Assembly (NCBI GenBank): GCA_010909165.1
Contig: MU008165.1
Span: forward strand, 1,984,001-2,048,000
Reading direction: 5' to 3'
Source: Anthoceros angustus
Lineage: Eukaryota > Plantae > Anthocerotophyta
DNA: 64,000 nt
A program made the translations under genes and the position numbers. The notes beneath the pieces are model-generated. The model saw only the letters and a program-made list of their open reading frames with translations, ran no database searches and was not told the DNA's origin. Each line of letters starts with the position of its first letter. Positions within the stretch are counted from its first letter, which is position 1. Of the stretch, positions 21,219 to 58,851 are shown in pieces.

Positions 21219-24086
21219 TCAAAACAAGCTGCTTGAGCCTGGCATATATATACTTTCCTCCTCCGGATGTTGTTTATCCCCAACCAAAAAGCTATGCACC
21301 AGCCCGTCCATGTCAGTCCACCAGCTCTGGCCTGCCTGCTTCCAGGCTCCAATTCCTGTTCTCTTAGCCTGCATCTCCTGTGCCTCCAACAACATCTGGG
21401 AACCGGTGTATATGTTTGACATCAACACATATGCTGCAGGGTCCATTTCGTCCAGCTTCACTGCTTCTTCGAAAGCAAGGCGTCCAACCTCCAAGTTGCC
21501 CCACTTTCGACAAGCACCCAATAGAGTGTGCCAAACTGCGACATCAGGCTGCACAGGCATAGTCCGTACCAAAGCTAGTGCCTCGTCCAGTCGGCCGGCA
21601 CGACCCAGAAGATCGACCATGCATGTGTAGTGCTCTATCATGGGAGTGACGGCAAACTTTCTGCTCATAGCCTCAAAATACTCTCGCCCCTTCTCCACTA
21701 GGCCGACATGACTGCATACTCTCAGTAAACTCAGGAATGTCACGCTGTCTGGCTGGACGCTATCCCCTCTCATTCTGTGAAACAAGTTGAAAACCACTTC
21801 ACTGTCCCCTTGACGGGAGTATCCTGCAATCAGTGCATTCCAGGTGCCAATGTCTCTTTGCAGCATTGCCTCAAACACTTGCTGGGCATAAACCATGCTC
21901 CCAGACCTTGCATACATGTTTATCAAAGCGAGGGCAACAAGTACATCAGCTTGGGCCCCTTGTTGTTCAATCTGTGCATGAAGCTGCCTGCCTACATGCA
22001 AAGCTGCCACATTTGCGCATGCCTGCAGGATGCATACAAATGTCACAGAAGAAGGTACAATGGTGCCTCCTTCCTGCATAGCACTGTAGAGACGAAGTGC
22101 CTCCTGCCCCATGCCCTGCTGAGAGTATCCTGTTATCATGGCATTCCAGGATACCACAGTTTTTTGGCCAAGTCCATCAAAAACGCCCTGAGCATCCTCC
22201 ATGCTGCCACACTTTGCATACATGTTTACCAAACTGTTGGCCACAAAAACATCAGCCTGAAGGCCTTGCTCTTCAATGTGTAAATGAAGCTGCTTCCCCT
22301 GCTCCAAAGCTGGGACACCCAATGTTGCGCACGCCTGCAGGAGGCACACAAATGTCACAGCATCAGGAGCGGCCGTGCCCTCTTCCTGCATATGAGTGTA
22401 AAGATGAAGAGCTTCCTGAGCCATACCCTCTTGGGAATATCCTGCTATCATGGCGTTCCAAGTGACAACATCTTTTTGAGGAAGCTTATGAAACACTCTC
22501 TCCCCTTCTTCCAAGCTGCCACACTTTGCATACATGCTTACCAAACCATTTGCTATAACCACATCACCTTCAAGTCCTAGGTCTCTGATCTGTGCATGAA
22601 GCTGCCTCCCCTTCTCCAAAGCTAGATAGCCCGTGGTTGCACAAGCCTGGAGGAGGCACACAAATGACACAGCATTAGGAGCGGCAATGCCTTCTTCTTG
22701 CATAGTATTGTAAAGACAAAGGGCTTCCTCACCCATGCCATGGTGGGAATATCCTGCTATCATGGCATTCCACGTCACCACATCTCTTTGAGGAAGCTCG
22801 TCGAACAGCATTTGAGCTTCTTCCAGGCTGCCACACTTTGCATACATGTTGATCAAACTATTTGCTACAAAAATGTCAGCCTGGAGTCCTCGTTCTCGAA
22901 TCTGTGCATGAAGCTGCTTCCCCTTTTCCAGAGCTGGAGAGCCCACGGTTGCACATGCCTGCAGGAGACACACAAATGTCACAGCAGTAGGTGCAGTGAT
23001 GCCTTCTTGTTCCATGGCCTCATATAAGAGAAAGGCTTCCTGCCCCAATCCCTGCTGAGAATATCCAGCTATCATGGCATTCCATGTGACTACATCCTTT
23101 TGAGGAAGCCCATCAAACACTCCCTGAGCATCTTTAAGGCTGCCACACTTTGCATACATATTGACCAAACTGTTGGCGACAGCCACATCAGCCTGAAGCC
23201 CTCTTCCTCCAATCTCTGCATGAAGCTGCTTCCCCTTCTCCAAAGCCGAGGCACCCACACCTGCACATGCCTGCAGGAGGCTAACAAATGTGACAGAAGT
23301 GGGTACAGCAATGCCTTCTTGTAGCATAGAACTGTAGAGCTGAAGGGCTTCTTGACCCATGCCATGCTGGGAATATCCTGATATAAGAGCTGTCCATGTC
23401 ACAACATTTTTCCCACCCAGGCCATCAAACACTCTTTGAGCATCCTCCAAGCTGCCACACTTTGCATACATGTCAACTAATCCAGTAGAAACAAACAGAC
23501 CAGGCTCAACCCCAGTGGCCAACACATCAGCATGCACCAGCTGCCCAGCTTCCAGGTCTGCTGCCCGGGCACAAGCCTGCAGGGCTGCTACAAACACATG
23601 ACCATCTGGCTTCACACTCGACCTGCGCATCTGATGATACAGTTGTATGGCCTCCCTATCTTGTCTGTGCTTAACATGCGCCGAAATGATGGCAGACCAC
23701 GTGAAAGCATCTGGGTTAGCAACCGTTCTGAACACATCCATGGCTTCTTGCAACATGGCATGAGAAGCATACATCCGCAGGATGTGGTTGCACAAAAAGG
23801 TGTCCGTCTCAGACCTCTTCTTCACAATAAGAGCATGGACACAGCGACCCAGGACCACATCCCTCACACATTTAGTTAGGACTGTACAAAGCAAAGAGTG
23901 AGAAACAAGACATTCTGTTTGCACCAAAACACCCAGAGCCTCCACAGCCTCTGTGAGCTGCCCCTGCTCACATAATATGCCCACAGTTCCGGCTGTGACG
24001 CGCCTTTCGTATCCTGGGGGCCTGCAAGGGTGGGGACCAGGACCATCCCGCAACCTCCAGTTAGATGGCCAAACACAAGTCTCCAT
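21219..24086 (-). CDS. PLS-class PPR protein (23 motifs + E1/E2 + WW-type PG box/E+), organellar RNA-editing specificity factor; no DYW deaminase
   Basis: Intronless 955-aa ORF: L-S, six P-L-S triplets, P2-L2-S2 (IEHYTCMVDLLGRAG), E1 (VWHTLLGACR), E2, then KQAGQSWWTDMDGLVHSFLVGDKQHPEEESIY. An apparent 2-nt frameshift lies in the E+ part. Confidence 0.93.
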   Translation of the reverse strand: METCVWPSNWRLRDGPGPHPCRPPGYERRVTAGTVGILCEQGQLTEAVEALGVLVQTECLVSHSLLCTVLTKCVRDVVLGRCVHALIVKKRSETDTFLCNHILRMYASHAMLQEAMDVFRTVANPDAFTWSAIISAHVKHRQDREAIQLYHQMRRSSVKPDGHVFVAALQACARAADLEAGQLVHADVLATGVEPGLFVSTGLVDMYAKCGSLEDAQRVFDGLGGKNVVTWTALISGYSQHGMGQEALQLYSSMLQEGIAVPTSVTFVSLLQACAGVGASALEKGKQLHAEIGGRGLQADVAVANSLVNMYAKCGSLKDAQGVFDGLPQKDVVTWNAMIAGYSQQGLGQEAFLLYEAMEQEGITAPTAVTFVCLLQACATVGSPALEKGKQLHAQIRERGLQADIFVANSLINMYAKCGSLEEAQMLFDELPQRDVVTWNAMIAGYSHHGMGEEALCLYNTMQEEGIAAPNAVSFVCLLQACATTGYLALEKGRQLHAQIRDLGLEGDVVIANGLVSMYAKCGSLEEGERVFHKLPQKDVVTWNAMIAGYSQEGMAQEALHLYTHMQEEGTAAPDAVTFVCLLQACATLGVPALEQGKQLHLHIEEQGLQADVFVANSLVNMYAKCGSMEDAQGVFDGLGQKTVVSWNAMITGYSQQGMGQEALRLYSAMQEGGTIVPSSVTFVCILQACANVAALHVGRQLHAQIEQQGAQADVLVALALINMYARSGSMVYAQQVFEAMLQRDIGTWNALIAGYSRQGDSEVVFNLFHRMRGDSVQPDSVTFLSLLRVCSHVGLVEKGREYFEAMSRKFAVTPMIEHYTCMVDLLGRAGRLDEALALVRTMPVQPDVAVWHTLLGACRKWGNLEVGRLAFEEAVKLDEMDPAAYVLMSNIYTGSQMLLEAQEMQAKRTGIGAWKQAGQSWWTDMDGLVHSFLVGDKQHPEEESIYMPGSSSLF

Positions 24087-25129: not shown

Positions 25130-25610
25130 CCCGCACCCAATTCTGTGACATTTGTATCGTCTTGCAAAGCATGTGCAAGCGTAGGCACCCCAGCTTTCGA
25201 GAAGGGGAAGAGGGGAAGTAACTTCATGCACTAACTGGAGAACGAAGGCTTCAGGTTGATGCGTCTGTAGCCAACAGCGTAGTTGACATGTATGCAAGGT
25301 GTGGCAGCCTATGCAAGGTGTGGCAGCCTAGAAGACGCTCAGGATGTGTCTGATCCACTTTCTCAGAAACTTGTGGGAACATGGAATGCCTTGAAACCAG
25401 GATGTTCCCAGAAGTGAAAAGGCCTGGAAGCCCTTCATCTTCTCATTGCCATGCAAGAAGAATGGGTGGGAGAGCCTAATTTCGTGACCTTTTTGTCCCA
25501 TCTGCGGGCATGTGCAGCTGTGGGCACTCTGGCTATGGTGAGCGGGAAGCAGCTCCATGCACAAGCCAGAGAACAAGGGCTTCAGGGCGACGTGTTTGTA
25601 GCCAACAGCC
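25130..25610 (+). pseudogene. PLS-PPR fragment (L-S-P-L-S), inverted relative to the intact PPR gene
   Basis: APNSVTFVSSCKACASVGTPAFEKGK; VANSVVDMYARCGSL; EPNFVTFLSHLRACAAVGTLAMVSGKQLHAQAREQGLQGDVFVANS. Contains frameshifts and a 19-bp duplication (25291-25328). Confidence 0.85.
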
Positions 25611-25949: not shown

Positions 25950-26255
25950 GTGGCAAGGGGGAGGGGGTGGCAAGGGCATGGGCATGGGCTGGCATGGTTG
26001 GCATGGCTGGCGTGGTTAGCATGGCTGGCATGGTTAGCATGGCATGGCTGGCATGGTTAGCATGGCATGGCTGGCATGGTTAGCATGGCATGGCTGGCAT
26101 GGTTAGCATGGCATGGCTGGCATGGTTAGCATGGCATGGCTGGCATGGTTGGCATGGCATGGCCGGCATGGTTAGCATCGCATGGCTGGCATGGTTAGCA
26201 TGGCATGCCATGGTATGGCTAGCATAGAATAGCATAGCATGGTATGGTGGGCATG
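25950..26255. repeat. GCATG-based minisatellite (~23-bp unit gcatggcatggctggcatggtta)
   Basis: Directly visible tandem array. Confidence 0.9.
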
Positions 26256-28053: not shown

Positions 28054-29464
28054 CCACCCTCGAATAAGAGGATATGAGATATCAAGTATAGAGAAACACT
28101 TCACTATAATGTCCACCACCCACACCTAAACCACTCTTAAAAGAAATGAGAAGAGTAGACGTTATTAATAGGCGAGATGGGGAATCCCATCTACCCCTGA
28201 ACTACTCTTAAATGATCATCATGATAAGTTTGAGATAACACACATAATTATATCATACAGCAATATTCATACACATAACTAATTTAGGAATATAAAAAAT
28301 ATTTACTAAACAAAATCATTTCCAACCACATATAGATGCACTTTTGAACAAGATTATGATAATTATGAGGGACACTATAATTATATAATTATTACACATG
28401 ATTATACTCATATATATATAGTAAATTAACAATAGAAAAAAAGTCATTAATAAAAGTTGCTTACTAATTACCATGTCTCCTTTATGGGCACGGTATGCTA
28501 GCCATAACCACAACTTTCTCTAAAGGTCTATAGGCCATGGGTGTCCAAGCTCTTATGGCTATCATGGTTTTCCGAGGCAGAGCCTGCTCGCATCTATGAC
28601 TTTGTACGCGCCATAGCAACATGTAGCCTTGGTTACCTTTGCTCTCACAGCGGCCATCAATGCCATCGCCCATGTAGCCATGGCCGATATGGCAGCCTTA
28701 ATGAGCTAGCATGGCTTTCCGGCATTCGAGATAGTTTATGTATGATATCCATCATGCATGACATAGTGGCATGGTACACCGTTCATGCATGTCACGGTGG
28801 CACAGTGCAACGGTACAGCGGTGATACAGTGGCACCCTAGCCAATGGTTGGTGTAGCATTGCAATGGTGCAATGGTCATTATAAGGAGGGGCTACCTTTT
28901 ACAAATGGGTCGTTAGAGGAAACTACAACACTTTTACTACAACTCAAAGCCTTGTTGTAAGTTTTTCGAACATTTACAACAAGGGTTCCTAACTAATATG
29001 ATGTGGCACGGATTTTACAACAGGGGTTTGTTGACATGGTATGTTGGCACGGATTTTACACCGGGGGTTGCTCGTTGTCCATGACGTTGTTAATTGTGCA
29101 TAAACTCTTTTTGATTTAGAAAACTAGGAGGTTATTTGTTAATAAAACTATACTTTGTTGAATATATAATGACGTGGCACATTGTTTGTAAAGGATGTTG
29201 TAAACAGTACTTGTAAAAGACATTCTAAACCTTGTTTGTTATAGATGTGGTTGTAAATAGTGCAAGACTTGACTTTTTGGAATAATACCATTCATCGGAA
29301 TATAAATGAATAGATTTATTATTTGCTGATGTGGCAAATTCGTTGCAAATGATGTTGTAAATATGTTTATTTGGATTTATGTTAGTTATGGGATTATCTA
29401 TTTTTGTTTTGTATTTACTGCCTTGTCACATGCATTGTAACTATGGTTGTAAAACGAATGAAAA

Positions 29465-29466
<2 letters not shown>

Positions 29467-29560
<94 letters not shown>
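29467..29560. repeat. (TA)n microsatellite
   Basis: Perfect dinucleotide run. Confidence 0.98.
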
Positions 29561-29562
<2 letters not shown>

Positions 29563-30052
29563 TTATTTGCTGACATGCCAACTTGAGTGCAAATATGATT
29601 GTGAAATGGTTTCTTGAATTTATGTTATATCATTGGATTATTAATTTTTATTGTATATTTGTTAACGCGCACATGCATCGTAACTATGGTTGTAAAATGC
29701 GGATTTTTTCATGAATTATGTCATCATGTGCCAATATCCATGAATGAATATTATTTGCTGATGTGGGCATGTTTGTCGCAAATGCCGTTGTAAAATTGTG
29801 GAAGAGATCTTTTCCTTATTTATGTCATTTATGAGGTTATATATTAGTAAGATTGCTGATTTGGCATGCTTGTCGCAAATGCCATTGTAAAATTGTGGAA
29901 GAGACCTTTTCCTAATTTATGTTATTTATGAGGTTATATGTTAGTAAAATTTCTTATGTGGCATGTTCATTGCAAATATGTTGTAAAGTGTTATAAAAAT
30001 TTGTCGATTTATAAATAGTGCCAGCGCATTGTAAATGTTGTTGTAAGAATTT

Positions 30053-30460
30053 TCTTGGCCAAGCTGTCAAAAACGAGGCGTGCATCTTCCAGCTCGCCAC
30101 ATTTGGCATACAGGTCCACTAGGGAAGCGCCCACAAGTATGTTATCCAAATGTCCCCTTTGCACAATCTGTGAGTGCAGTTGCCTGCCCTTCTGTAAGGC
30201 ACAAACGCTTGCACATGCCTTCAAAAGGCAAGCAAAAGTAACCACATCAGCCACAATCAGGCCAACTTGCTGCATTCGTGCATACAAAAATAGCGCCTCC
30301 TAACCAAGCCCTTTCTGTCTATACCCAGAAATCAGGGCATTCAAAGTCAGCACATCCTTTGGGCTTAGGCATTCAAAAACTCGATGCGCATCTTCAGTTC
30401 GCCACACTTTGCCTACATGTCCACCAGGCAAGTGCCCACAAGTGTGTTATCTAGATGTCC
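30053..30460 (-). pseudogene. PLS-PPR fragment (second copy ~32070-32428)
   Basis: GHLDNTLVGTCLVDM*AKCGEL...; YARMQQVGLIVADVVTFACLLKACASVCALQKGRQLHSQIVQRGHLDNILVGASLVDLYAKCGELEDARLVFDSLAK. Contains a stop and frameshifts. Confidence 0.88.
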
Positions 30461-30702
30461 TCTAATAACATGTGGTTCCTACACTCAGGGGCTACTAATC
30501 ATATATGCCAATTGAGAGAGAAATTTACTACTTACACTACGGTGTCCACAAGCCAACTTGTTTTACTAGGAGACGATAGTGGCTTAGGAGAAGTGCAGCT
30601 ACCCCTTGTAGGTCGAAGGGACATTTGTCTCCAAAATGTTTTGCACGTACCTAGCATGACAAAGAACTCGTTATCCATACGCAAATTAATATCAGATCAT
30701 GA
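30461..30702 (+). mobile_element. Ty1/copia protease-region fragment (duplicated copy)
   Basis: WFLHSGATNHIC...LQNVLHVPSMTKNSLSIRKL matches the copia W.lDSGAT.H and L.nVLhVP...kNLlSv.kL motifs. Confidence 0.85.
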
Positions 30703-31472
30703 GTGCAAATATGTTGTAAAGTGTTATAAAAATTTGTCGATTTGGCATACAGTGGTACCTTGGTCAATGGTTGGTGTAGCGGTGCAACGGTGCAGCGGCG
30801 ATACAGTAGCACCCGACCCTGGCAATCATTGTTGTACAAGGTCCAGAACATATGAAACATATTGTGTGAAACCGAGGCTCTTATGTATGGAATTTTATGT
30901 AAGCACCCACACGCCAAATTCCGAGAGGCTAATGGCGATAAAAGACACTCTTGCGAAATACTGTGTGTAGCTTTCCGGTGCCTTGCACAACTCTCATCGA
31001 CATCTTTTCTATATTTTTTGTGAGAGGGTGTCTGAAGAGTCCCAAACGACATCACGATCCCAAACGTTTGACAAGTTCTTAGGTTCTAAAATAAGCGTCA
31101 TTCACGAAGACATCACTTAGTTTAAAATGGCCACGTGATGAATATATGTGGATCATACCATATACTCTGGACAAATTCCATACACAAAACCGTAGAATAT
31201 TCGTAGTTCAACCATAGAATATAGAGAAGTTCTCGAACATTCTAGAATTATAGAGTTTCTTCCAAAAGACCCGTGCGCGTGACTTTTGGAATAATACCAT
31301 TCATCGGAATATAAATGAATAGATTTATTATTTGCTGATGTGGCAAATTCGTTGCAAATGATGTTGTAAATATGTTATTTGGATTTATGTTAGTTATGGG
31401 ATTATCTATTTTTTGTTTTGTATTTACGCCTTGTCACATGCATTGTAACTATGGTTGTAAAGCGAATGAAAA

Positions 31473-31572
<100 letters not shown>

Positions 31573-34500
31573 TTATTTGCTGACATGCCAACTTGAGTGC
31601 AAATATGATTGTGAAATGGTTTCTTGAATTTATGTTATATCATTGGATTATTAATTTTTATTGTATATTTGTTAACGTGGCACATGCATCGTAACTATGG
31701 TTGTAAAATGCAGAAGCCGGATTTTTTCATGAATTATGTCATCATGTGCCAATATCCATGAATGAATATTATTTGCTGATGTGGGCATGTTTGTCGCAAA
31801 TGCCGTTGTAAAATTGTGGAAGAGATCTTTTCCTTATTTATGTCATTTATGAGGTTATATATTAGTAAGATTGCTGATTTGGCATGCTTGTCGCAAATGC
31901 CATTGTAAAATTGTGGAAGAGACCTTTTCCTAATTTATGTTATTTATGAGGTTATATGTTAGTAAAATTTCTTATGTGGCATGTTCATTGCAAATATGTT
32001 GTAAAGTGTTATAAAAATTTGTCGATTTATAAATAGTGCCGGTATAAATGTTGTTGTAAGAATTTTCTTGTATCAAAAGCGTGCATCTTCCATCGCCACA
32101 TTTGGCATCTGAGTCCACTAGGGAAGCGCCCACAAGTATGTTATCCAAATGTCCCTTTGCACAATCTGTGAGGAGGCACCTTATACGCTTGCACATGCCT
32201 TCAAAAGGCAAGCAAAGTAACCACATCACCACAATCAGGCCAACTTGCGCATTCGTGCATACAAAAATAAGCGCCTCTAACCAAGCCCTTCGCCTATACC
32301 CGTAAATCGGGGCATTCAAAGTCGACATCCTTTGGGCTTAGGCATTCAAAACTCGATCGCATCTTGATTCGCCACACTTTGCCTACATGTCCACTGCAAG
32401 TGCCCACAAGTGTGTTATCTAGATGTCCTCTAATAACATGTGGTTCCTACACTCGGGGCTACTAATCATATATGCCAATTGAGAGAAATTTACTACTTAC
32501 ACTACGGTGTCCACAAGCCAACTTGTTTTACTAGGAGACGATAGTGGCTTAGGAGAAGTGCAGCTACCCCTTGTAGGTCGAAGGGACATTTGTCTCCAAA
32601 ATGTTTTGCACGTACCTAGCATGACAAAGAACTCGTTATCCATACGCAAATTAATATCAGATCATGAGCTGCAAGTGCTGTTTACACCAGCAGGCTGCTT
32701 GGTGACTCCAGCAAAACCGGTGCAGCGGTGATACAGTGGTACCTTGGTCAATGGTTGGTGTAGCGGTGCAACGGTGCAGCGGCGATACAGTAGCACCCGA
32801 CCCTGGCAATCATTGTTGTACAAGGTCCAGAACATATGAAACATATTGTGTGAAACCGAGGCTCTTATGTATGGAATTTTATGTAAGCACCCACACGCCA
32901 AATTCCGAGAGGCTAATGGCGATAAAAGACACTCTTAAATCTGTGTAGCTTTCGGTGCCTTGCACAACTCTCATCGACATCTTTTCTATATTTTTTGTGA
33001 GAGGGTGTCTGAAGAGTCCCAAACGACATCACGATCCCAAACGTTTGACAAGTTCTTAGGTTCTAAAATAAGCGTCATTCACGAAGACATCACTTAGTTT
33101 AAAATGGCCACGTGATGAATATATGTGGATCATACCATATACTCTGGACAAATTCCATACACAAAACCGTAGAATATTCAGAGTTCAACCATAGAATATA
33201 GAGAAGTTCTCGCGAACATTCTAGAATTATAGAGTTTCTTCCAAAAGACCCGTGCGGCAGTGCCCGACTTTTTGAGATATCCCAAACTACATGCCATAAA
33301 CAACTGGGTCAACTTGTATGCAACGTACTGTGGACGTACTTTCGCTGGCCGACCAGCTAGGCGTACACTATGTCCCGTATCGTGTAGTATGTAGTTCGAT
33401 CCCAAGTGAATGTATCATGCCGCACTATCAGCCTTCTAGTTCTAACTACTTCGGGGAGTTTCCATCCAGTTTATACTGATATTAATGAACTTACCCCAGC
33501 CACCAAACTTGGACTCTGTGGGGACAAGGGAGGAATGGTAGACTCCCCCTTATGAAGGTAATAGGCGTGTTCTTTTTTTGTTCTTTAGTGTGTGGCGTGA
33601 GGAATAAGGCAGAAAAAGGGGAACTAAGGACGAATGGGCTGGATTACGACGAACAAGAAGGACTGAAGGAAGGATCCGTGTCGGACAACGTCGGATAGGC
33701 TACAAGGAACTCTGGAGTAAACTCAGGAGCGGACCAAGGTAAGTGTGGTGGAAGGAGTAACTGCGGAGAAGGAGCGGAGCGTAATAGGCAAGCGGGACAC
33801 GTGCACGGTGCCGAGTGGAAGACTGACATGCAGCGGACTAGGACTGCAGAGTTGTCAGTGGCCGTTATAGGCAGGTAACCACGACCCAAGGACATGCGCC
33901 AAGAAGACGACGGGCGTGAAGTTGCGATACGATGCGTGATTCTTGCGATTCGGCGGCGAAGGGCGTCTTCCGCGCATCAATTCGCGGCATACTGTTGAGA
34001 AGACCATTTTCCCGGTCGACTTCTTGGCAATTCTCGCTGTCGCTCGTGCTCAGACACCTCGCTCTTTGGCACTTTCTCTTCCGACGTTCGAGCGCAATGC
34101 CATGTGACCTTCATCTCCTTGCGGCGCATCAATCCATCCGGAGCTTAGGAACCTCGTGGAGAGCATCATAGCCCTCCATACCTCAGCGGCAGAGCGAGCG
34201 GCGCGTGAACATGGGACCCAAGAAGGCGGTAGAGGTCTGGGAGCCCTGGTGCTTGGTGGAGAAAAAAATTGTGATGAGGCGCTACCCGGATTTCGGCCCA
34301 TGGCTTGCCGAAGCAGGGGAGTTGGTGCAGGAGTGGCACCTCGACATCTTCCACGTGGTATGGACCTTTGACAGCGTGGCGCTGGTCCGGGAATACGCCC
34401 GGAAGATGTTGGCGGCGGCAACCAAGGCTGTCCGCTCCAAGAGCTTGCGGGAGGATCCAAGGAGGTGGACGGTGGAGGTCCTTCGGGTAGTTTACAATCG

Positions 34501-35949
34501 CCCAGCATCACTTCTTCACAGGAACACTCTCTTACCTTAGCCGAGGGGGTTGACTTCCATGACTTGTATAGTCTGAAGATTAGTCATCAAGTTCACTCGA
34601 TTCAACAGCAAACGTACGTTGCCGACACACAACCAAGTGTAAGCAAGACTTTCTTATGGCACTGCAGACTTTGTCACCCAAGTTTAGCCTACATAAAACA
34701 AATAACCAAGAACAAGGCCATGTATAAGGATGGGCTTACTTTTCAACCAGAAGACACCTATTCTTCTGTGAAGGCTGCCAGTACGGCAAACTTACTCAAA
34801 AACCGTATAATGATCCTTCACCAACTCGAGCCACAGCCTTACTAGAAGTTATACATACGGATATATGTGGACCTATGTCCACACAATCATTCAGTGGAGC
34901 TATTTATTTCCTATCGTTTATGGATGAGTGGAGTCATTATTGCCAACTCTATTTTCTACATAGTCGCTAGCAGACTTTTGCCAAGTTTGAGGAATATACA
35001 ACTATAGCGGAAGCACAGACTGGCCATGTGATTAAGCGTCTGTGCAGTGAAAATGCTAAGGAGTACATTAGTACAGAATTCACTGAGTTCTGCAAATGAA
35101 AAGGCATCATTCACCAACTGACGGTACCCTAACATCCACCTCAGAATCCCTTTGCAGAACGTTATAACAGGACTTTGCAGGAAAGGACCAGGGCAACATT
35201 GGCACTCGCTGGACTTACCCGGGCATATTGGGCAGAAGCAGTTGATTCTGTGAACTACATCACTAACAGACTGCCATTGAAGCCCTTAACATGATAATTT
35301 TTGAAGGGGGGGAATATAGTAACCCCCTTCAGTCGAGACAACACCCCCTTGTCACGATGTACACCCTTCCTGCAACAGCATATCTGCCCTACTTTGATAA
35401 TGCGCACACCCTTTCTAAGCCCATACCTTTGATAAAAGACGCACTTTCAAGTCTAAACTCCAGAGCTAGAGCATAGTAGGGTGTGGGCCCGTCTGCTTTT
35501 TTGTGGAATGCATAGAGGGCTGCCATTTTCATATGTTTATTACAACTGAAAACTTTTACTTTCAAGTGGTGGAACACAATGAAAGCAATCCTCCTTTAGC
35601 AGTTGTTTGTTGAAATGTTCTCACGACCACTGAAATAAGACTCCCGATACTGAGTCAAGGACCACCACCAAATTCCGAAGGCGGTCCATATCCTCTGCGT
35701 CAAAGCTGTCATTCTCCTCCAATGCTTGCTCGTATTCATTAGTATAATTCTTGGGCTGAGCTTCGGACGGTGTCGACTACCACGCTACATTTAGGGTCTG
35801 CTGACCCTCATCCAAAAGCTCGCCAATCGTGGTCTTCAACCTTCTGGCACTCAATGCAACCACTTGGGCTTTAAGGCAATGCCAACGTCCTTAAAATGAA
35901 CAAAGTTGGTTGCCCATGCGCCCATGCAAGCGTCCTTAAAATCAACAAG

Positions 35950-38588
35950 AACAAGGTCTCCTAAGAAGTAGAGACGACTCCTCGTCTCTACTTTTGAGGG
36001 TGTGAAATTTGGGGTTTGACGATGGAGAACCGTGCTTTGTCACGTTTTCAAAACTTTGGCCAAAACCTTAAGTGTGAAAGTCCGAAGTGAAGAATGAAAC
36101 CATGTTTTTTGAGGGTTTTACCTGTTATGGTTTTTTTTTAAGGTAACACAATCCCCTAATTACCCACCACAAAATGATTACAGTCGAAGATGGAAACCAA
36201 ATGTAACAAGCCATGTAGTCATACGGACATCATGAATTTCAAAATAGCGACATAGCAGGGGTTTGAAGGGTTGCATGCATGAGCGGTAAACAACAAAAGG
36301 TGGATGCCGCATCAACGTAATTCTATGACCGTGGATATCCGGTGAACGCGGCTTCATCGGTGAACTTGACTCAGCGCAAGTCAAGTGTTGGTTGCCACGG
36401 ATAGTGGCGATCATTTCTATGTTGCGAAACATGACATGAAAGTCACGGAGGCCGTGCGGCTTGCATTCTCCAAGTGCTCTCGAAAGTCCCACGAGGCAAG
36501 CGTTTGGATGTGTTGAGCGTCATTTACGAACCTCACCGCTAACCGACATAATCCATGCCCACCGGCCTAACCTCATCGGCTACAATGTTCGCATGCGTGG
36601 CGGTGCTATGACATATCGATCTGGGCCAGTGGTTATGTCATCGGACATGCTCAATGCTTGATGCGTAGTACGTGGTGTGACCAAGTCTGCTAGTTTGCGC
36701 CATGACAATACGCGAATGTGGGAGGAGTTTGACAATGGCGCCAGCTATTTTACGGGTTATGGCGGCGGGGCGGGGTTCTTATTGCAAGGGTGATCATGGG
36801 CCCGCTATGGTAGCATCACGCCTCAACATTCAATGGCGACAAAGAACAAAGCGCAAAATCGTATGCTTGCAATCCAGCTGAAAACAAGCACACGAGAACA
36901 TGCACTCGGGTTGACGGTCATCACCAGGACACAACCCATTGCAGAGAAGAGGGCCAGGAGGAGATCCACTTTGAGGGAGCGTCGTGGGGGCGCCTCCGGA
37001 GGCATCATCGCCAATTGGTGGCCAACCCTTATTCGAGTGGCATCCGTTTGCCACTCCCAAAGCCTCTGCGTGGTTCCACAGGGGGGAGGTGGGGATAAGG
37101 GTTTCTTTGAGGGAGCCCAAAGGAGGTGAGGACTCTAACCGAGAGGAGAGAGGGGCTGTGAGGCCCCGTGACATCTGCCATGATCTCACGTTGGCTGGGA
37201 AGGAGGTGAAGGCAGCTGAGATGGAGCTGCGGAGGTTCAGACCATATCTGGCCGTAAAGCCTGAACAGCGGGAGTTGACGAAGGAGGAGCTAGAGGCGTA
37301 AGAGGCGCAGGGCAGCAAGAAGGCGTCGAGGAGCTTGCGCTTGTAATGGCGGTGGGAAACAATGCCAAGGCATTGAGAGGGTTCAATCAGCCGGAGCCTC
37401 CGGCCGAGTGAAGGCTTTGGTAGTAAGGTGTTTCAATTCATGCATCCGCCGGTTGCTAATCGTGATTGCTGGTTTTGGTGCCGCTTGATGTTGCCGCCGA
37501 TCCGCTTGCTGATGTTACAGCCGTCTGTCATGGCCGTGCATGGGTAGTAAGGTCTTCTTTGTGAGCCAATGACCGATCGCTGCTCTTCATGTATGTAGGT
37601 GCCAACATATATGCGGGAGGTTGTCAGACAAAGGAGGGCAGTTGATGAGGTCCCTCCTTTTTGGGAGCCATGTAAGCCCCGGCTAGGATAGGCATTTTTG
37701 TTTTGGTGTGGGTGGAGTGCTAGAGCACCGCCAGACTTCAAACTTGATCATCATAAAAGAGGGCGAAATTGTTGGCTTTGTTCGGATAATGTGGTGCAAA
37801 GGTCACCGGATGTCCGTGCCTTTGGCGCCTTAAAAGAAAAGCTTGTCTTCGCTTAGATCGCAGATCCAACCTAGGTCCGACACCCTAGGCTATTCGCTTA
37901 TGAGTATGGGTCACTTGACTAAATTCGAAAAGTGACCGTTGTCCCAGATCGGTTATATGGTGCCATGGCACTTTTCTTTTAATATATGTGAGCATTTTTG
38001 TATAGTTTGGAGCGGACATATAGTTGGGCATATGGCCCATGTGGGATCTTGGTGTCTTATACCTCTAGTCTCCCACTTTAGTACCAAATCGATGTGTGCA
38101 TGCATGTTTGTGTATCGGGTAGTTGACATGAAGACACATATCCTTCTTGTTTTTATGGTGCCACAACCTTGCGATCGGTAAGGCGGGATGTCGGGCATAC
38201 TTGGACCAATGTGTACAAAAACCGTGTTAGCATATTGAGGTGTCATTGCAGTTTTCAACTTAGCACATTGGTTCTGAAATTGTCATAAATGTCCAGATTC
38301 AAAACGACAAACGGTTTTTGCGAAAATGCCCTTAAAAAGCCTTAAAACTAGGGTATTTTCCAACTTGATCCAACCATGGACCTTTCTTAACGGGGTTAAA
38401 AGACATCAAAAAGGTAGAAAAGATGCTTTTGACAACTACGGGAAATGGAAATAGTGTGGGTTTTGCCCTTGGTTTTTGGAAAAGCACCAAATCCAGAGAT
38501 TGGTTGCCAATTTGTAGGTCGAATGTGACCAAATGGACATCTGTCTCTAAAAAGAGGAGTGTGTCTCTACTTCTTAAGAGACCTTGTT
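35950..38588. mobile_element. TIR DNA element B (2.64 kb) nested in A, AACA...TGTT termini, 4-bp TSD CAAG
   Basis: Left aacaaggtctcctaagaagtagagac versus right reverse complement aacaaggtctcttaagaagtagagac (26 bp, 1 mismatch). CAAG at 35946-35949 and 38589-38592. Confidence 0.88.
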
Positions 38589-38736
38589 CAAGATTGAGTT
38601 AATAAGAGGATGTAGGATCTGAACTTGAACCTCCTCACTACTACACCTTTTTCCCAACCACTTCACCAACATTTCCAAATTGACAACTTTTGAGCCGCTA
38701 AATATTCATTTTCTTAAAGACAGCCTACGAGGAGGG

Positions 38737-38978
38737 GTAGGGTGTGCTAGGGGAGGCGCCACCGACCGGCCCATGGCAGATGGCATGTTGGGGAGGGGGC
38801 CGGCCATGGCGCCATGGGCGGTGTGCTAGGGGAGGCGCCACCGGCCCCATGGGCGGTGTGCTAGGGGAGGCGCCGGCCGACGCCCATGGGTGTTAGGGGA
38901 GGCGCCTGGCCGGGCGCCCATGGGCGTGGTGTTAGGGGAGGCGCCAGTCGGCCGGGCGCCTCCCTAGCACCATCCTAC
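38737..38978. repeat. GC-rich minisatellite (tgctaggggaggcgcc x~5) closed by an inverted copy; MITE-like
   Basis: Direct repeats followed by ggcgcctccctagcacc. No TSD found. Confidence 0.6.
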
Positions 38979-41900
38979 AGCATGCGGGTGAAGCTAGGGG
39001 GATAAGAAGGAACGGTATCCTATCACCACTAAGGTGTGGCCCATTTGTAGGAGGGGTTAAAAGATTTGCGTCCATAGGTGACTGCTGAAGAGTACAAGTG
39101 GTGGGAAGCCTTTTGGGTGGACTAGAAGGAGATTGCTATCATTGTGGAGAATAACATTGGGCTAGTGCTACAGCGTCCTTGGAAGTGGTTTTCACGTGCA
39201 GAAGTGGATCATACAGCCTGACCACTTCAAGTGCCGGATGAAGCTTTGCTGGATGAGGCATTATTGAGGGACCTCCCATAGCGTGATATGTACTTGGGGG
39301 CATATCAAAATGCCGGAAGGCAACAGTGGGAATGGCATGGATGAATAAAGACATAATGGAAATCTAGAAGGGGATGTTTCTGGTAGTGCCGTGTACTATG
39401 GACACGCATAATAGGCCATTCTGGATTGGGGAGAGTCATTGACGCGAAGCTAGATGCACCACGACCTCACTTTCTTATCCACTGGTATCGGACCGAGCAT
39501 ACAAATGCGTACGAAGGGAGATATGTGTAGGAATACATAGTCCGTCAGAGTGCTAGTTAACCCATCTGGTCTGATGCCGAGGACAAAAGGGAATAAGGTC
39601 CATTTCCCAAAAAACATACAAGAGGTGTTTGTGAATGAAACTGCCATCTTGTATTATGGGTTTGTGTTGAACGCACGGAAACATGTGTATGCGGTGGACA
39701 AAAAAGTAACAAGGGATAAAACAGTGTTTCTCAACGTAGGGGTTTGTCTCCGAACCCCATTTTGGCCCCAACCATCCAGAAATGCACTTGTCTCATTTCA
39801 CTGTTTTTAGTGATTTGCGAACCCACAGCCCATGCATCCGAGCCCAAAAGAAGACCTAATGTGCCCACCGTCCGCACAAATGCCGGACACACCTTTGTAC
39901 CAAGTGGCCGGATGACTGGCCCACTTATGCTCCAAAGAGCTGGAGTGCGCCAACGTCCGCGACTTATACTCCAAAGAGGTGCAATACACCGGGTTTGGAG
40001 AGGGTTGCGTCAATACTTGTGTAGGCAAGCACTTTCGCCTGTTGCTTGTGCACACTTGCCACCGCACCAACACTCACATCAATTCTCTTTTCAAACCCCG
40101 TGATTGAGCAATCCTGCACGGCAGTATACTGCCCCGACCGCCCCTCCGTGAGATAAGCCGCACTTAGATCTCGCAGATTAGGCCTCAGCAGAATTGGACA
40201 AGGTAAAGGATGGTGAGGCCTCCTCAACCGCTCTTGATCAAACTCTTCGTAGCTTACATTTCTTCTTGTCAAGTCCGCATCGCTTTCAACCTTAATCTAT
40301 CCATGGGTGGCACATGGAGCAAGTCGATCTTAAATTCAAAATCTCCGCGAAGCTTGGCTATAGTCTTTTCGAACACCCACGCGCCACACCGTAGTGGGCG
40401 CCATAGGATGTATGTGTCCTCCTTCGAGCCTCACCAAAATACTCACCATTTGGTCAAAACCCCCAGGACCAGCCCTCTTCTTCGTGACATCACTGCCTCA
40501 CTAGGGCTCGCAGTGGCCAGGCAGATGCTCTCTTATACTTGAGTTCGATCGCATCCTGTGCTTTCATTACTCAAGGACAAATCATCTATTCTATTTATTT
40601 TCTTGCTTCTCCGCAAAACATTGTGAAACATTGTCGCCTTCAAAAGGTTGGCCATTAGAAACCACCATCATACATGTCGAATTTTGGAAAATGTAGCTCA
40701 TCTAGAAACCAAGGCCTATGCATCTATACGCATCAAACTCGAATGAGCCGGACATTTGGCGACCAATCAAAGAGATCCAAATTGCAAGTCATAGGGCACA
40801 TAGAGTAAGGCCAAAAGGTTTAACATGTTGTATACAAAGCGAATGTGGAATATAACATCAACCAACAAATGATTTTCAAAATAATATTCATGACTTTACG
40901 CCTAGATACCGGATGATTTACAAATTTTTCAAACCACTAAAAATCAACACTCCATCCTAGTATTGATACGCCTAGGTTGCTTAACAAAGGAGTTGTTACA
41001 AAGTTTTCAAAGCACCAAAAACAAGCAAACCATCCTAGTACTAATCCGACCCAAGAGTGCTTATAAGGAAGTTCTAAAGCACCAAAGTCAAGCACCCCAT
41101 CCCGGTATCGATCCGACCAAGGTGCTTAACCTTGAGTTCTTATGCCATTGAGTCTACCACCTATCCCGAGGATGCTGAAGACAAACAATATATATACAGG
41201 CGCCGGACGTCCGCGATCCACTCCACCATTTCCATCTCACGACGCCCACAAGATTGGGGTCTAAAATGCGCCGGACGTCCGCAGTTTTAGCAGACTCGCC
41301 AATGTGCCGAACGTCCGCGCATTGCTCCAATTCCTTCTATGTTTTTCACTCTAACAATGGAGATCCTGTGGTTGTGTACTCACAGGCACAGACGCCAGCT
41401 ACTTTTAGAGTCGTAGTTTGGTCCTCTCGAGATGGCCATGATCGGCTATCGGTTAATGTTCTTCACAATTGCGCCGGACGTCCAGCTTGTTTTTCGCTGA
41501 ATTGCTACTTTTATGGTTATCGGACGTCCGCAGCTTGGCGGACTAATTTTGTTTGGTTTGCCACTGCTCACCCCGCTAGGAAGTACTATCGTCATGAAAG
41601 AGGTGTTTAGGATTCCTAGCACCGTTAAAAATCCTTGAAATCCCTTCCTTGTGAAGGTGAAATCCATGAACCTTCTTGGCAACCTGTGTAAGTATTCACG
41701 AGAAAATAACATGGTCAATGTCTTTGATGTTTAAAAGTGGTTTTGCTAAAGATGATGCATTTTGGCCTGCTGGGGTCATTTTTGGTCTTTAGGGACCCAA
41801 ACCCTTTAATGGAGAATAACCTATGTTGAGAGACGCTTATAAGCTTTTGCAAGTTGCGCACCTTGACACACAAGTCAAAGTGCTGCTGAAGATAGTGATG

Positions 41901-42749
41901 ACAATGCTGGAGAAGCTCGACCAAGTGATGACGAAGGATTGAACTCGTGATGAGTGAAATCGGGGTTTGTCCGGGGTCCCAGTGAATGTTGTACGTCTGT
42001 TCCGGATGTTATTGTGTTTTGAAATACCTGTGGCTTTTGTTGTGTCCATACTAAACCACATTTTCCTCCCAAAACCGAATTTCTGTCGTCCTTCCGGAAC
42101 GGCCTTCCTTACCGTTCCTACTTTGCATTAATCCCATAGGTTCGAGTTTGCGATCACCATTCGACAGAAACATTGCTGGATGGAAAGTAGGAACTTTAGT
42201 GGGTGACACCCTTTTTTTTTTTGAGATGTTTTCCGGAATGCCTTAAAAACGCTGTTTTAGGGCCCATCAAAAACCCCCTTCATAGATTATTTACGGAAAA
42301 CCCCCTTCGAGATTATTCACCCCCTTCAAAAATTATGATGTTCCTTGTACGACATCACTCCTTATCGAGGTGGACAGGGAATAAGTAAGCCCCATATATC
42401 ATATCTGCGTGTATTCGGTGCAGCCGCTTATGCTTACATCCCTTCCGACAAGAGACGGAAGATGGACAACAGAGCAAGCAAGTATATATTCGTTGGATAT
42501 TCCGACACAGTTAAAGGATACAAACTGTATAATCCCTCAACAAGGGAATTAACTATGGCAAGGAGCGTAAGCTTCAATGAAACCTTTATCCTTCACTCCC
42601 ATCTTCGCTCTGTTACAAGCCACGAGCTTCCACCATCAGCACCTGTACACGACCATTCACCTGTATTCCATGCAGAGGACACTGATATTTATACTGATTT
42701 CCAGCACTCCTCCTATGAATCAGATGATGACATACCTCTTCAACCGGTT

Positions 42750-45569
42750 GCAAGGCAAGGCAAGGCAAGGCAAGGCAAGGCAAGGCAAGGCAAGGCAAGG
42801 CAAGGCAAGGCAAGGCAAGGCAAGGCAAGGCAAGGCAAGGGGGTGGCAAGGCAAGGGCAGACAGAGACAAGGCAAGGCAGAGACAGGGCAAGGACAGAGA
42901 CAGGGCAAGGGCAAGGCAAGGCAAGGCAAGGCAAGGCAAGGCAAGGCAAGGCAAGGCAAGGCAAGGCAAGGCAAGGCAAGGAAGAGAGGCAGAGGCAAGG
43001 CAAGGCAAGGCAAGGCAAGGCAAGGCAAGGCAAGACAGAGACAAGGCAGGCAAGGCAAGGAAGGCAAGGAAGGCAAGGCAAGGTGGGCAGGCAAGGCAAG
43101 GCAGAGGCAAGGCAAGGCAAGGTGGGCAAGGCAGGCAAGGCAGAGGTGGGGGAGACAGGCAAGAGACAGAGGCAAGGTGGGCAAGGCAAGGCAAGGCAGG
43201 ACAGGCAAGGCAAGGCAGAGACAAGGCAAGACAGAGAAGGCAAGGCAAGGCAGGAGGCAAGGCAAGGCAAGGCAAGGCAAGGCAAGGCAAGGCAAGGCAA
43301 GGCAAGGAGACAGCAAGGCAAGGCAAGGCAGAGCAGAGATGAGGCAAGGCAGGAGAGACAAGGCAAGGCAAGGCAAGGCAGAGACAGAAGGCAAGGCAAG
43401 GTGCAAGGCAAGGCGGACAGGCAAGGCAAGGCAAGGCAGAGAGGCAAGGCAAGTGAGGCAAGGCAAGGCAAGGCAAGGCAGGAGGCAAGGTAAGGCAAGG
43501 AGGTGAGGCAAGGCAAGGCAAGGACAGAGACAAGGCAAGGCAAGGTGGGCAAGGCGCAAGGCAAGGCAAGGCAGAGCAAGGCAAGGCAAGGGCAAGGCAA
43601 GGCAGAGCAAGGCAAGGCAAGGCAAGGACAAGGGCAGAGACAAGGCAAGGCAAGGCAAGGCAAGGTGAGAGGCAGATGAGACAGAGAAGGCAAGGCAAGG
43701 CAAGGCAAGGACAGGCAAGGTGAGACAGAGATGAGGCAAGGACAGGCAAGGAAGAGACAAGGAGGCAGATGAGAGACAGGCAAGGCAAGGCAAGGAAGAG
43801 GCAAGGCAAGGCAAGGAGGCAAGTGAGGCAGAGGCAAGGGGCAAGGACAAGGCAGGCAGAGGCAAGGGATGGCCAAGGCAAGGCAAGGCAAGAGGCAAGG
43901 AGCAAGGCAGACAGAGGCAAGGCAGGCAAGGTGAGAGGACAGAGCAGGCCAAGGCAGAGGCAAGGACAGGCAGACAGGCAAGACAGAGGCAAGGGCAAGG
44001 CAAGGGGCAAGAGAGGGGCCAGAGACAGGCAGAGGCAAGGCAAGAGACAGAGACAGAGACAGGCAGGCAAGGCAAGGCAAGGTGAGACAGGCAAGGCAAG
44101 GCAAGGCAAGGCAAGGCAAGGCAAGGCAGAGACAAGGCAAGGCAAGGTGAGAATGCAAGGCAAGGCAAGGCAGGCAAGGCAAGGCGAGACAGGCAGAGCA
44201 AGGCAAGGACAGAGACAGGCAAGGCAAGGCAAGGCAAGGACAGAGACAAGGCAAGGCAGAGACAAGACAGGCAAGGCAAGGCAAGGCAAGGCAGAGACAG
44301 AGACAGAGACAGAGGCAAGGCAGGCAAGAGGCAAGACAAGGCAAGGCAAGGCAAGGCAGACAGGCAGAGACAAGGCAAGGCAAGGCAAGGTGAGGCAAGG
44401 ACAAGGAGAGACAAGGCAAGGCAGAGACTGAGACAGAGCAAGGCAGACAGACAGAGGCAAGATGAGACAGGCAAGGCAAGAGAGACAGGCAAGGCAGCAG
44501 GCAAGGCAAGGCAAGGAGGCAAGGCAAGGCAAGGCAAGGAGGCAGAAGGTGAGGCAAGGCAAGGCAAGGTAAGGCAAGAGCAAGGCAAGGCAAGGCAAGG
44601 CAAGGAGGCAAGGCAAGGCAAGGCAAGGCAAGGCAAGGCAAGGCAAGGCAAGGCAAGGCAAGGCAAGGCAAGGCAAGGCAAGGCAAGGCAAGGCAAGGCA
44701 AGGCAAGGCAAGGCAAGGTAGGCAAGGCAAGGCAAGGCAAGGCAAGGCAAGGCAAGGCAAGGCAAGGCAAGGCAAGGCAAGGCAAGGCAAGGCAAGGCAA
44801 GGACAGGCAAGGCAAGGCAAGGCAAGGCAAGGCAAGGCAAGGTGGCAAGGCAAGGCAAGTGAGGCAAGGCAAGGCAAGGCAAGGCAAGACAGAGAAGGCA
44901 AGGTGAGGCAAGGCAAGGCAAGGCAAGGCAGAGAGGTGAGGCAAGGCAAGGCAAGGCAAGGCAAGGCAAGGCAAGGCAAGGCAGGCAAGGCAAGGCAAGG
45001 CAAGGCAAGGCAAGGCAAGGGCAAGAGGCAAGGCAAGGCAGGCAAGGCAAGGCAAGGCAAGGCAAGGCAAGGCAAGGCAAGGTAAGGCAAGGCAAGGCAA
45101 GGCAAGGCAGGCAAGGCAGGCAAGGTAATGAGGCAAGGCAAGGCCAGGAGGCAGGCAAGGGCCAAGGCAAGGTAAGGCAAGGCAAGGCAAGGGCAAGGGG
45201 GGGCAAGGCCAAGGCAAGGGTGAGGCAAGGCAAGGAGGCAAGGCAAGGCAAGGACAGGCAAGGGGGCAGGCAAGGCAGAGGCAAGGCAAGGCAAGGAGGC
45301 CAAGGCAAGGCAAGGCAAGACAGGCAAGGATAAGGCAAGGCAAGGCAAGGCAAGGCAAGGCAAGGCAAGGCAAGGCAAGGGCAAGGCAGAGCAAGGCAAG
45401 GGGGCAGAGGCAAGGCAAGGCAAGGCAGAGGCAAGGCAAGGCAGCAAGGCAGGAGGCCAAGGCAAGGGGGCAGGCAAGGCAAGGCAAGGGATGGCCAAGG
45501 CAAGGCAAGGCAAGGCAAGGCAAGGCAAGGCAAGGCAAGGCAAGGCAAGGCGAGGCATGGCCAAGGCAA
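42750..45569. repeat. (GGCAA)n pentanucleotide satellite, ~2.8 kb, degenerate in the middle
   Basis: Directly visible. It is the source of the artefactual QGKAR/LALPC ORFs. Confidence 0.98.
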
Positions 45570-46334
45570 AGAAAAAGATAAAATGGTAAGGGAAAGCGAT
45601 TACTGTATAGCAAAGTCTCCAAAGATGAAGAAAAAGCTGAGATGGCCCTCATACCTTATCGAGAAGTTGTGGGAAGCCTTTTATACTTGGCCGGGTGGAC
45701 AAGACCTGATATCTCACAAGCAATAGGGGTTGTATCCCATTACTTATCCAATCCCGGCAGAAGACAGTGGATTGCTGTAAAACGGATTTTGCGTTACCTT
45801 AAAGGAACAAGGCATTTATGCCTCAAGTACACAAAGAGCAATGACATCGCACTTATATGCTTGTCAGATGCCGACTGGGCTGGTTGCATTGACGGTAGAA
45901 GATCGATTGCTGCTTATTGCACCCTACTCTGTGGATCAGCAGTAAGCTGGCAAAGTAAGAAGCTCACCATCATCAGTCTGTCATCCACCGAAGTGGAGTA
46001 CAGTGCTCTGTCCTTAGCAGCCAGGGAGATATGTTGGATTCGTCAATTCCTCACTGAGATCCATATTTAGCAGACCACTCCAACAATCCTACAGTGTGAC
46101 AACCAGTCAGCCATCGCACTATCTGCCAACCCAGTGCTACATGCCCGTTCAAAACATATTGAAATACAGTTCCATCCTACAACTCAGAATGTGGCAGACC
46201 TCCTTACAAAGGGGTTACCGAAGCTGCTACATGAGCAACATCGACTGTCACTAGGGTTAGAGCAAAACGAGGCTTATCTTAGCTCTACGCCTGATGCTAT
46301 AGCTCAGACAGCTCTCTCCTAAGCTCCAAGGGGA

Positions 46335-55896: not shown

Positions 55897-56641
55897 TCAC
55901 GAGGAATAGGCGTAGTCAAATTGAGTGATACCAAGCATGCTGCTCAGCGTGAGATAGACAAGGTATAGCGAGCCTCCCAAAACCGCCACTACCAACACGG
56001 CCGTGACCGGACTCTTGAGCAGATCCACAAGCGGCTTCACCAGGCTGTAGAGCCCCCCCGAGGCGACGGTGAGGAAGTACAACCCGTACCTGCGCATGTT
56101 GTCCCAGAACTCCTCCACCAGCGGCCCATCCGGCCCGAATGCCAGCGCCTGCATGTCGGATTCCATCCCTACCCGCTCCCTCACCACCATCTCCACAGCG
56201 TGCGCGGAAGGCACAGCCAGCATCGCCAACCCTAACCCTAACACCCCGGACGCCATAGCCACGCCTCCGAACTGCCTTCCCAGCAGCCCCCGCGGGAGGT
56301 CTGGCTCGTAGCACCACGACGCGTCTTCCCTTCCGGCCTTTCCCTCCCAGGACTCCCTCCCTTCCGCCCCTCCCGCTCCTCCCCGTCCTCCTCCTCGCCC
56401 TCCCGCGCCCGAGCACCGCCAGCAGCCACGACGGCGGCAGCACCAGCCCGCCTCCTCCTCCGGCGGGCTCTCCCCTTCTCCCCGCCAGGCACCGCCTCCA
56501 CTCCCTGCTAACCCTCTTCCCCAGGCTCGGCCTCTGGCTCACCAGCGTCTGCCTGCTTGCCGTCGCCGTCCGCTGCACGCATGGCGCCAAAGGACCCGCT
56601 GCCAGAGCCGTAGCGCCCGCCATGGCCATCGCCATGGCCAT
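55897..56641 (-). CDS. ycf33: Ycf33-like plastid membrane protein with transit peptide; frameshifted as given
   Basis: The C-terminal ORF FGPDGPLVEEFWDNMRRYGLYFLTVASGG...LLKSPVTAV..TLSSMLG matches nuclear Ycf33 proteins. The N-terminal MAMAMAMAGATALAAG (ATG 56641) is in a different frame across a G-rich tract. Confidence 0.75.
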
Positions 56642-57095
56642 TTTCTCGGAATGCACACTCGAATCGCCGCACCAGCGAATGAAATTGCACTCGTCAAGGC
56701 ATCACTCGAACTCCCATCTGCGCGTCTGGGCAAGCAAGCATGTGGACGGACACACAGACTCACCGCAACTTCCCTTTCCCCAGCCTCACAAATTCGAACT
56801 CGAAGCTCAATACGATTGTCAAACCGTTGTCATCTCACTCCAAAGTGATGATTGGGCGTGTTATGTGCTGCTGGTTGTTACCCTCGTACCCAGTTCGCTC
56901 ACTTGGATATCCAGACCCATTTCACCCAAGCCATTTGCGACGGCTTCTCTATCCAAGAAGGAAAACGTAAGGAGATAAACACATATTAGATACAATATGT
57001 TATGCCACATGTTACGAGATCCAGTTATGTGCGCGAAACGAAACTCCCAAACTCGCAATCATAACACCGCGTAACAGATTACGAATACAAGCGAT

Positions 57096-57185
57096 TGTCG
57101 ATCCGCAGGATGCCATATGCTGGCAGCCTCTAACCAGGTAACCACCTGGTCTGAGGCTGCTAGCATGGCGTCATGCGGATCCACA
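57096..57185. ncRNA. Long imperfect hairpin, candidate MIRNA precursor
   Basis: gatccgca-gga-tgcc-atatgc-tggcagcctc-ta-accaggt [aacc] acctggt-ct-gaggctgcta-gcat-ggcg-tca-tgcggatc: ~40-bp stem with G:U pairs and small bulges, intergenic. Confidence 0.4.
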
Positions 57186-57546
57186 CTAACCTTCTTGATA
57201 CTGTATTCCTGTATTCCTGTGAGCAAATGCCGGGTGGAGCTGTGCGAAGGCGGCATCGACAAATGCTGGAGGTGTTTCGACGCGGCATCCAAACTCTAAG
57301 GCGGTCAAAAATTGGAGTCGCTGAATAGAACCTATGCACTATAGCAAAGACAAAAGGCAATGAATAACTCAAAGGAGACCTATGCCCACCTACCTAACTT
57401 CTTATCAGCCCAATGTTGTCGTAGATGAACGTCCACTACATAGCATCCAAAGACGCAACCCACGTCCACATAAACAACTCTTGTGCCCAAACCCTTAGCC
57501 TCGTGGATATCCCTTACAAGACATAGCTTTAGAACATACAAGTCGA

Positions 57547-57738
57547 TTAGTTTGCTTTTCCCACTAGTTCCCGCAAAGAAGGGTTAAATGGACTGCAAAA
57601 GCTCTTTGTCGTGAAACATAATCTCCCTGCACTTTTTTAGTTTGCTTTTCCCACTAGTTTCCCCTAGTTTCCGCAAAGAAGGGTTAAATGGATTGCAAAA
57701 GCTCTTTGTCGGGAAACATAATCTCCCTGCACTTTTTT
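57547..57738. repeat. ~90-bp direct duplication
   Basis: ttagtttgcttttcccactagtt...cgcaaagaagggttaaatgga.tgcaaaagctctttgtcg.gaaacataatctccctgcacttttt occurs twice. Confidence 0.85.
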
Positions 57739-57806
57739 TGAAACTATTCTGAAAAAGGGTCTTCAACACTAAATATATCTCATTTCCTAGCCTGGACTTC
57801 TTCAAT

Positions 57807-58040
57807 TAGGTCTCCTTGAGAATGACGATCGTAGGTTGACTTTTCTAAAACTATCATGTGGGACCTCCTTGGAATGATGAACGAAGGTTGACTTTTCTAA
57901 AACTGTCATGTGGGACCTCCGTCAGAATGATGAATGTAGGTTAACTTTTCGAAAACTATCAGATGGGACCTCCTTGAGAGTGATGAACGTAGGTTGACTT
58001 TTCAAAAACTATCATATGGGACCAATATCCTTGAATAATG
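57807..58040. repeat. ~53-bp tandem repeat, 4+ copies
   Basis: gggacctcc..gaatgatgaacgtaggttgacttttc.aaaactatcat recurs at 57860, 57912, 57965, with a partial copy at 58018. Confidence 0.88.
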
Positions 58041-58851
58041 ATAGATTGGTAGCTAGGGAAATCTAAAAAAGAGAGAGTAGTTATTTGACAATGATCAACA
58101 TTGATAGGAACGAAGTTCCTCATGTTTTAAGTTATTTCAGATTATTTTATTAAATAAAAATATGTAAATTAAACCTAAACCTATTTTCTCCTTTGCTTCC
58201 ACTATTTGGCACACCATCTAAAGATGGTTGAAGGGCTTGGCAGGTTGTGCAGCTTTGGTGCCTTATGTGCATAAAGGTTTATTTGGAGTCGATGGTGTTT
58301 CCTGAAAAGCTTATTTAGACTCAGCATCGGTCACCCATTGTATACACGCAGGTTCTGTTGTGATTTTCATGCCATTGGACAACAATATTGTATATATGGT
58401 AGGACGCCTTGTTGACACCAAGTACTACTCTCTGATAGGTTTGCCAACATGTCCTTTAAGGAGAGAAGCATTGCGGAAGTCCAAGCCGAAGGGGAAGAAT
58501 TGCGTAAGTCCAAGCCTAAGGGAAAGTGTGGAGGCGAGACCCTATGCTTTGACCTCCCCAAAGTTTGGTTTCATACTGGATTTGTTTTTTTTGTGTCATT
58601 TTGTGTGTTAAGTAGGAGGCGAGCTTTGACAATAAGGTCCCATTGAGCCGATTTCAAGACAATCACAACTCGTCATGGGCGGTGTGGTGTGCCCTTCCTA
58701 GGGGCTTCTTGTGGAGCCTTAGGAGTTCCTATTGGAGGTATAAATACCTCCAAGCCTCATCTCAATGTGAGAGAGTTACACTTGCCTCCTCCTCTCCTCT
58801 CCTCTTTCCACCATCATGGGCTGCCACACGATCCTTCACTAAATCCTCCTC

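Follow-up and report, generated by a model that had tools for sequence, protein, structure and literature searches.

The Sola superfamily of DNA transposons is defined by a 4-bp target-site duplication, and a curated Ectocarpus library gives a duplication of this length for Sola-1 and Sola-2 alike (PMC12477816). The Ectocarpus element Sola1-1_Ec32 has AACCG...CGGTT ends with a 4-bp duplication (PMC12477816, supplementary file 3), and its transposase is closest to that of Sola1-1_PPa from the moss Physcomitrella (PMC12477816); a review counts Physcomitrella Sola1 among the transposons of land plants. In the insects Bombyx and Rhodnius, Sola1 is represented by MITEs (miniature inverted-repeat transposable elements; Sola1_NA) with GGACCG... 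ends and AWWT or AWDT targets, a preference that has been called a hallmark of Sola1 (PMC3845634). A survey of 1007 plant genomes found seven superfamilies, Ginger and Sola among them. Here we describe two nested elements, A and B, in a 64,000-nucleotide stretch of the Anthoceros angustus genome (Anthocerotophyta; assembly GCA_010909165.1, contig MU008165.1, positions 1,984,001 to 2,048,000, hereafter the window), and compare them with these systems.

A and B were confirmed to be real, nested, gene-less cut-and-paste transposons with a common end chemistry: each has terminal inverted repeats (TIRs) that open with AACA and close with TGTT, and each is flanked by a duplication of the length that defines Sola, CCTT for A and CAAG for B (Table 1). 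A first-pass annotation of the window had delimited both elements in this way; reading of the sequence together with a repeat finder confirmed its boundaries, TIRs, and duplication for A, and the nested position, TIRs, and duplication of B held as well. The A-type end has AACAYGATAATTTT as the start of its inverted repeat, and the match between A's flanks stops at four bases, the fifth base differing on either side. For B, whose end is of the type AACAAGGTCTC, the repeat finder lengthens the arms by one G/C pair, and the flanks then become CAA and AAG; because this longer-arm reading leaves no duplication, the 4-bp reading was taken. The evidence for B's boundaries consists of its inverted ends and flanks, whereas A has the restoration of a host reading frame besides. 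A paralogous 45-bp repeat inside A, taken as a proxy for the empty site of B, has a 4-base periodicity that leaves the comparison ambiguous by eye.

The host of A is a dead copia retrotransposon, in which A occupies the linker that joins the catalytic core of the integrase to the SH3-like domain. The left flank is a decayed integrase core, with gag_pre-integrs and Pol_BBD upstream of the core, and in the right flank a match to the SH3_retrovirus domain (E 1e-26) begins 13 residues past the junction. When A and one CCTT were removed, joining position 35287 to 42347, a single open frame reading AEAVDSVNYITNRLPLKPLYDITPYRGGQGISKPHISYLRVFG was obtained, with the spacing usual in copia integrases; the empty-site sequence of the copia element at this insertion is CTGCCATTGAAGCCCTTGTACGACATC. 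Both the translation of the junction and the SH3 domain match thus substantiate the earlier claim that excision restores the integrase frame. Because frame restoration is independent of the repeats, A's boundaries and its 4-bp duplication are doubly fixed. B may have joined A either before or after A's entry into copia, as both orders fit this single copy.

Two further repeats adjoin the host element. About 100 codons past the SH3-like domain, in place of the remaining retrotransposon, begins a ~2.9-kb array (42750-45600) derived from the pentamer CAAGG, with GCAAG repeats and many variants, which gives rise to spurious minus-strand open frames of 950-980 codons. Upstream, adjoining the copia gag region, lie two tandem ~2-kb units (29270-33215) that are 99-100% identical and each contain a long (TA)n tract; these could be a tandem long terminal repeat or a recent segmental duplication.

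We also weighed the reading that the inverted repeats and their flanking 4-mers are products of chance or rearrangement, with which the single copy of each element in the window would agree: at up to three mismatches, neither the left or right end sequence of A nor the end sequence of B had a further copy in the window, and each gave 0 matches in shuffled sequence. The window was scanned for inverted ends of 20 nt that had two mismatches or fewer, lay no more than 15 kb apart, and were flanked by identical 4-mers; 20 composition-preserving shuffles of the window served as the control. The real window yielded A, B, and one pair within a repeated pentatricopeptide-repeat (PPR) gene region, and nothing else. 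The shuffles contained 0-4 inverted pairs each, and in none of the 20 was a pair accompanied by a matching 4-bp flank, as against two independent cases here of 26-29-nt inverted ends with exact 4-bp flanks. Further, when A is excised at precisely those bases, the conserved frame of the integrase is regained, which effectively refutes an origin by chance or rearrangement, and we regard it as extremely improbable.

Apart from the terminal AACA, A and B have unrelated end sequences, as the first-pass annotation had observed and sequence comparison corroborated, and blastn detected no similarity of either element to the other or to the rest of the window. The same annotation had recognized no transposase in A or B. 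Consistent with this, the 43 open frames of ~60 amino acids or more in the two elements returned only noise against Pfam at E values up to 1, and neither element had an Rfam match. An open frame near A's right end had no relative in a set of 5.8 billion proteins. A 20-nt pattern from A's end had 11 matches in metagenome contigs, none of which continued like A, and these were taken as chance. Across the rest of the window, a scan of 99 open frames of at least 100 amino acids yielded host-gene and copia domains, with no transposase, DUF7869, ParB, or methyltransferase among them.

The repeats next to the ends differ between the two elements. The window has seven copies of the 8-mer GAAGGGGG, five of which are no more than 70 bp from an end of A (two left, three right), and these motifs are putative transposase binding sites. 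In B, GTCTCTAC is repeated beside each end, and forms a short hairpin at the left one. The interior of A contains GC-rich repeats of 35 bp along with tandem repeats of 67-78 bp. A and B are typical non-autonomous elements, each with family-specific repeats that resemble binding sites. Because AACA...TGTT ends and 4-bp duplications are common to both elements, and neither has a transposase of its own, a single type of enzyme most simply moves both.

Table 1. Coordinates of A, B, and the flanking copia host in the window
Feature	Position	Strand	Remarks
Decayed host copia pol to the left of the insertion: gag-pre-integrase domain, and integrase core containing stop codons	34372..35287	+	
Left target-site duplication of A, CCTT	35284..35287	.	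Identical 4 bases at 42343-42346
Element A, non-autonomous TIR transposon	35288..42342	.	7055 bp; 4412 bp without B and B's duplication
Left inverted end of A, starts AACATGATAATTTTTGAAGGGGG	35288..35316	+	Inverted-repeat pair, 29 nt, 93% complementary
Subterminal GAAGGGGG motifs, A left end	35303..35330	35303 on +, 35323 on -	
Left target-site duplication of B, CAAG	35946..35949	.	Sequence reading
Element B, non-autonomous TIR transposon nested in A	35950..38588	.	2639 bp
Left inverted end of B, AACAAGGTCTCCTAAGAAGTAGAGAC, then short hairpin repeating GTCTCTAC	35950..35975	+	Repeat-finder pairs
Right inverted end of B	38563..38588	-	1 mismatch in 26 nt against left arm
Right target-site duplication of B, CAAG	38589..38592	.	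Sequence reading
Three subterminal GAAGGGGG motifs, A right end	42274..42327	-	42274, 42301, 42320; also in repeat-finder families
Right inverted end of A	42314..42342	-	Pairs with left arm; 1 mismatch in first 23 nt
Right target-site duplication of A, CCTT	42343..42346	.	Removing one copy restores frame
SH3-like domain at the C-terminus of the host copia integrase, to the right of the insertion	42347..42650	+	PF25597, E 1e-26

Several described superfamilies could be set aside by their signatures. Confirming the earlier statement that the standard plant TIR superfamilies do not fit, the flanks of A and B match over exactly four bases, which separates them from hAT (8 bp), Mutator (9-11 bp), CACTA (3 bp), PIF/Harbinger (TWA), and Tc1/mariner (TA). 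Similarly, piggyBac and Kolobok duplicate TTAA, and not CCTT or CAAG. Among the seven plant superfamilies, Ginger and Sola are, to our knowledge, the only groups with a 4-bp duplication.

Duplications of 3-4 bp or of 4 bp are reported for the Ginger, Academ, and Chapaev groups, and A and B might thus be non-autonomous members of Ginger1, Ginger2, Academ, or the Chapaev branch of CMC. Ginger1 and Ginger2 resemble A and B in their 4-bp duplications and are present in some plants, in which the survey of plant genomes recorded active Ginger clusters. Assignment to any of these groups is nevertheless quite doubtful. Ginger elements end in TGT...ACA rather than AACA...TGTT, and Ginger2 favors TATA as a target, rather than sites such as CCTT or CAAG. 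In the literature consulted, we found no record of a Ginger, Academ, or Chapaev element with AAC ends, and neither Academ nor Chapaev was among the seven superfamilies of the plant survey.

The first-pass annotation had also set Sola aside, a step that was not supported: a 4-bp duplication is what defines Sola, and AACCG-CGGTT ends are those of Sola1-1_Ec32. Its view that A and B belong to two non-autonomous families mobilized by one type of transposase was retained, but its suggestion of an uncharacterized lineage was not supported. Relying on signature and elimination, with the literature as our reference, we consider it reasonably likely that A and B represent two non-autonomous Sola1 families, unrelated to each other and moved in trans. 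For the AACA ends and 4-base duplications, the known Sola1 group is a better fit than a novel lineage of transposons. Like A and B, Sola1-1_Ec32 carries terminal inverted repeats and duplicates 4 bp of no fixed sequence, and among the Sola1 ends considered, with a single plant-like reference end compared, it is this element, and not the insect Sola1 with GGACCG, that shares the AAC...GTT termini. Unlike A and B, Sola1-1_Ec32 is autonomous, is 21.5 kb long, has imperfect inverted ends of 282 bp, and carries a ParB-methyltransferase gene. The insect Sola1 MITEs (PMC3845634) resemble A and B as short, gene-less derivatives that are mobilized in trans, and also in their 4-bp duplication and in having inverted ends ~28-36 nt long; they differ in having GGACCGTTTATTTTGAAAG... 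ends and the AWWT or AWDT target preference.

Several observations weigh against the Sola1 assignment. A and B have just three terminal bases (AAC) in common with the single published plant-like Sola1 end compared, and the fourth and fifth bases differ (AACCG in Sola1-1_Ec32; AACAT and AACAA in A and B). When A's end was compared with the insect Sola1 end (ATTTTGAA), the similarity was not significant (p 0.10-0.30), and the same comparison for B's end gave a p of 0.66. The two duplications, CCTT and CAAG (n=2), do not conform to AWWT, the target preference in animal Sola1; nor do they end in A on either strand, as the duplications of Sola1-1_Ec32 tend to do. However, because the Ectocarpus Sola1 also lacks AWWT, showing instead this bias toward a final A, the AWWT preference is not group-wide. 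Finally, no transposase was present among the window's open frames that were scanned.

Some of these same observations would be expected if the AACA...TGTT elements belonged to a DNA-transposon lineage that has yet to be described, with a transposase unrelated to Sola encoded elsewhere in the genome: the AACA terminus and the unconstrained targets (CCTT and CAAG) together match no complete signature that we found in print, the animal signature of GGACCG ends and AWWT targets is absent, and the window is without a transposase. We nonetheless consider such a lineage unlikely, as (i) a curated Sola1 element has AAC...GTT termini and duplicates 4 bp at no fixed target, (ii) Sola1 is known in land plants, and (iii) nothing that we observed needs a new superfamily. 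There is a similarly small chance that the AACA...TGTT elements are moved by a transposase from an undescribed lineage, or from a plant branch of Sola that has diverged deeply and follows end and target rules of its own, and that this lineage has been the source of many unrelated passenger families in the genome.

Under the Sola1 assignment, we postulate that autonomous elements at other places in the genome provide the transposase in trans, most likely a DDD enzyme of the Sola1 type. This transposase would bind the inverted ends together with the repeats next to them, namely GAAGGGGG in A (three at the right end and two at the left) and GTCTCTAC-type repeats in B. It would then cut exactly at 5'-AACA...TGTT-3' and join the element into a target opened with a 4-base stagger, the repair of which would produce the 4-bp duplication. 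Since A and B differ from each other in their ends and in their subterminal sequences, two different Sola1 families may serve as their partners.

Outside the nested elements and their host, the window contains an intact PPR gene on the minus strand (21219-24086), which encodes a 955-amino-acid protein with E and E+ motifs; its best matches are in the lycophyte Diphasiastrum (46-48% identity), followed by ferns and conifers (~38-40%). Some 1-2 kb from this gene, a block of inverted PPR-repeat-like fragments (25150-25570) accounts for many inverted-repeat pairs, and a minisatellite at 26001-26225 alternates steps of 9 and 14 bases (GCATGGCTGGCATGGTTAGCATG). A plus-strand open frame of 746 codons (1496-3733), rich in Ser, Asn, Lys, Glu, and Gln and without a Pfam domain, lies in an AT-rich region and resembles a large exon of a disordered protein. 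Two GC-rich blocks (10100-12700 and 55900-63300; 55-65% GC) have long overlapping open frames on both strands, the largest of which have no Pfam match.

The finding is of modest interest and would serve mainly as a rule for annotating this genome. A new cut-and-paste lineage would be indicated only if full-length partners of A and B prove to be non-Sola. If the Sola1 assignment is true, the outcome is one of routine annotation, in which AACA ends together with any 4-bp duplication become a rule for masking and classifying 'unknown' TIR elements. It would also mean that, in a non-seed land plant, several non-autonomous families have arisen from Sola1, a group seldom curated in plants.

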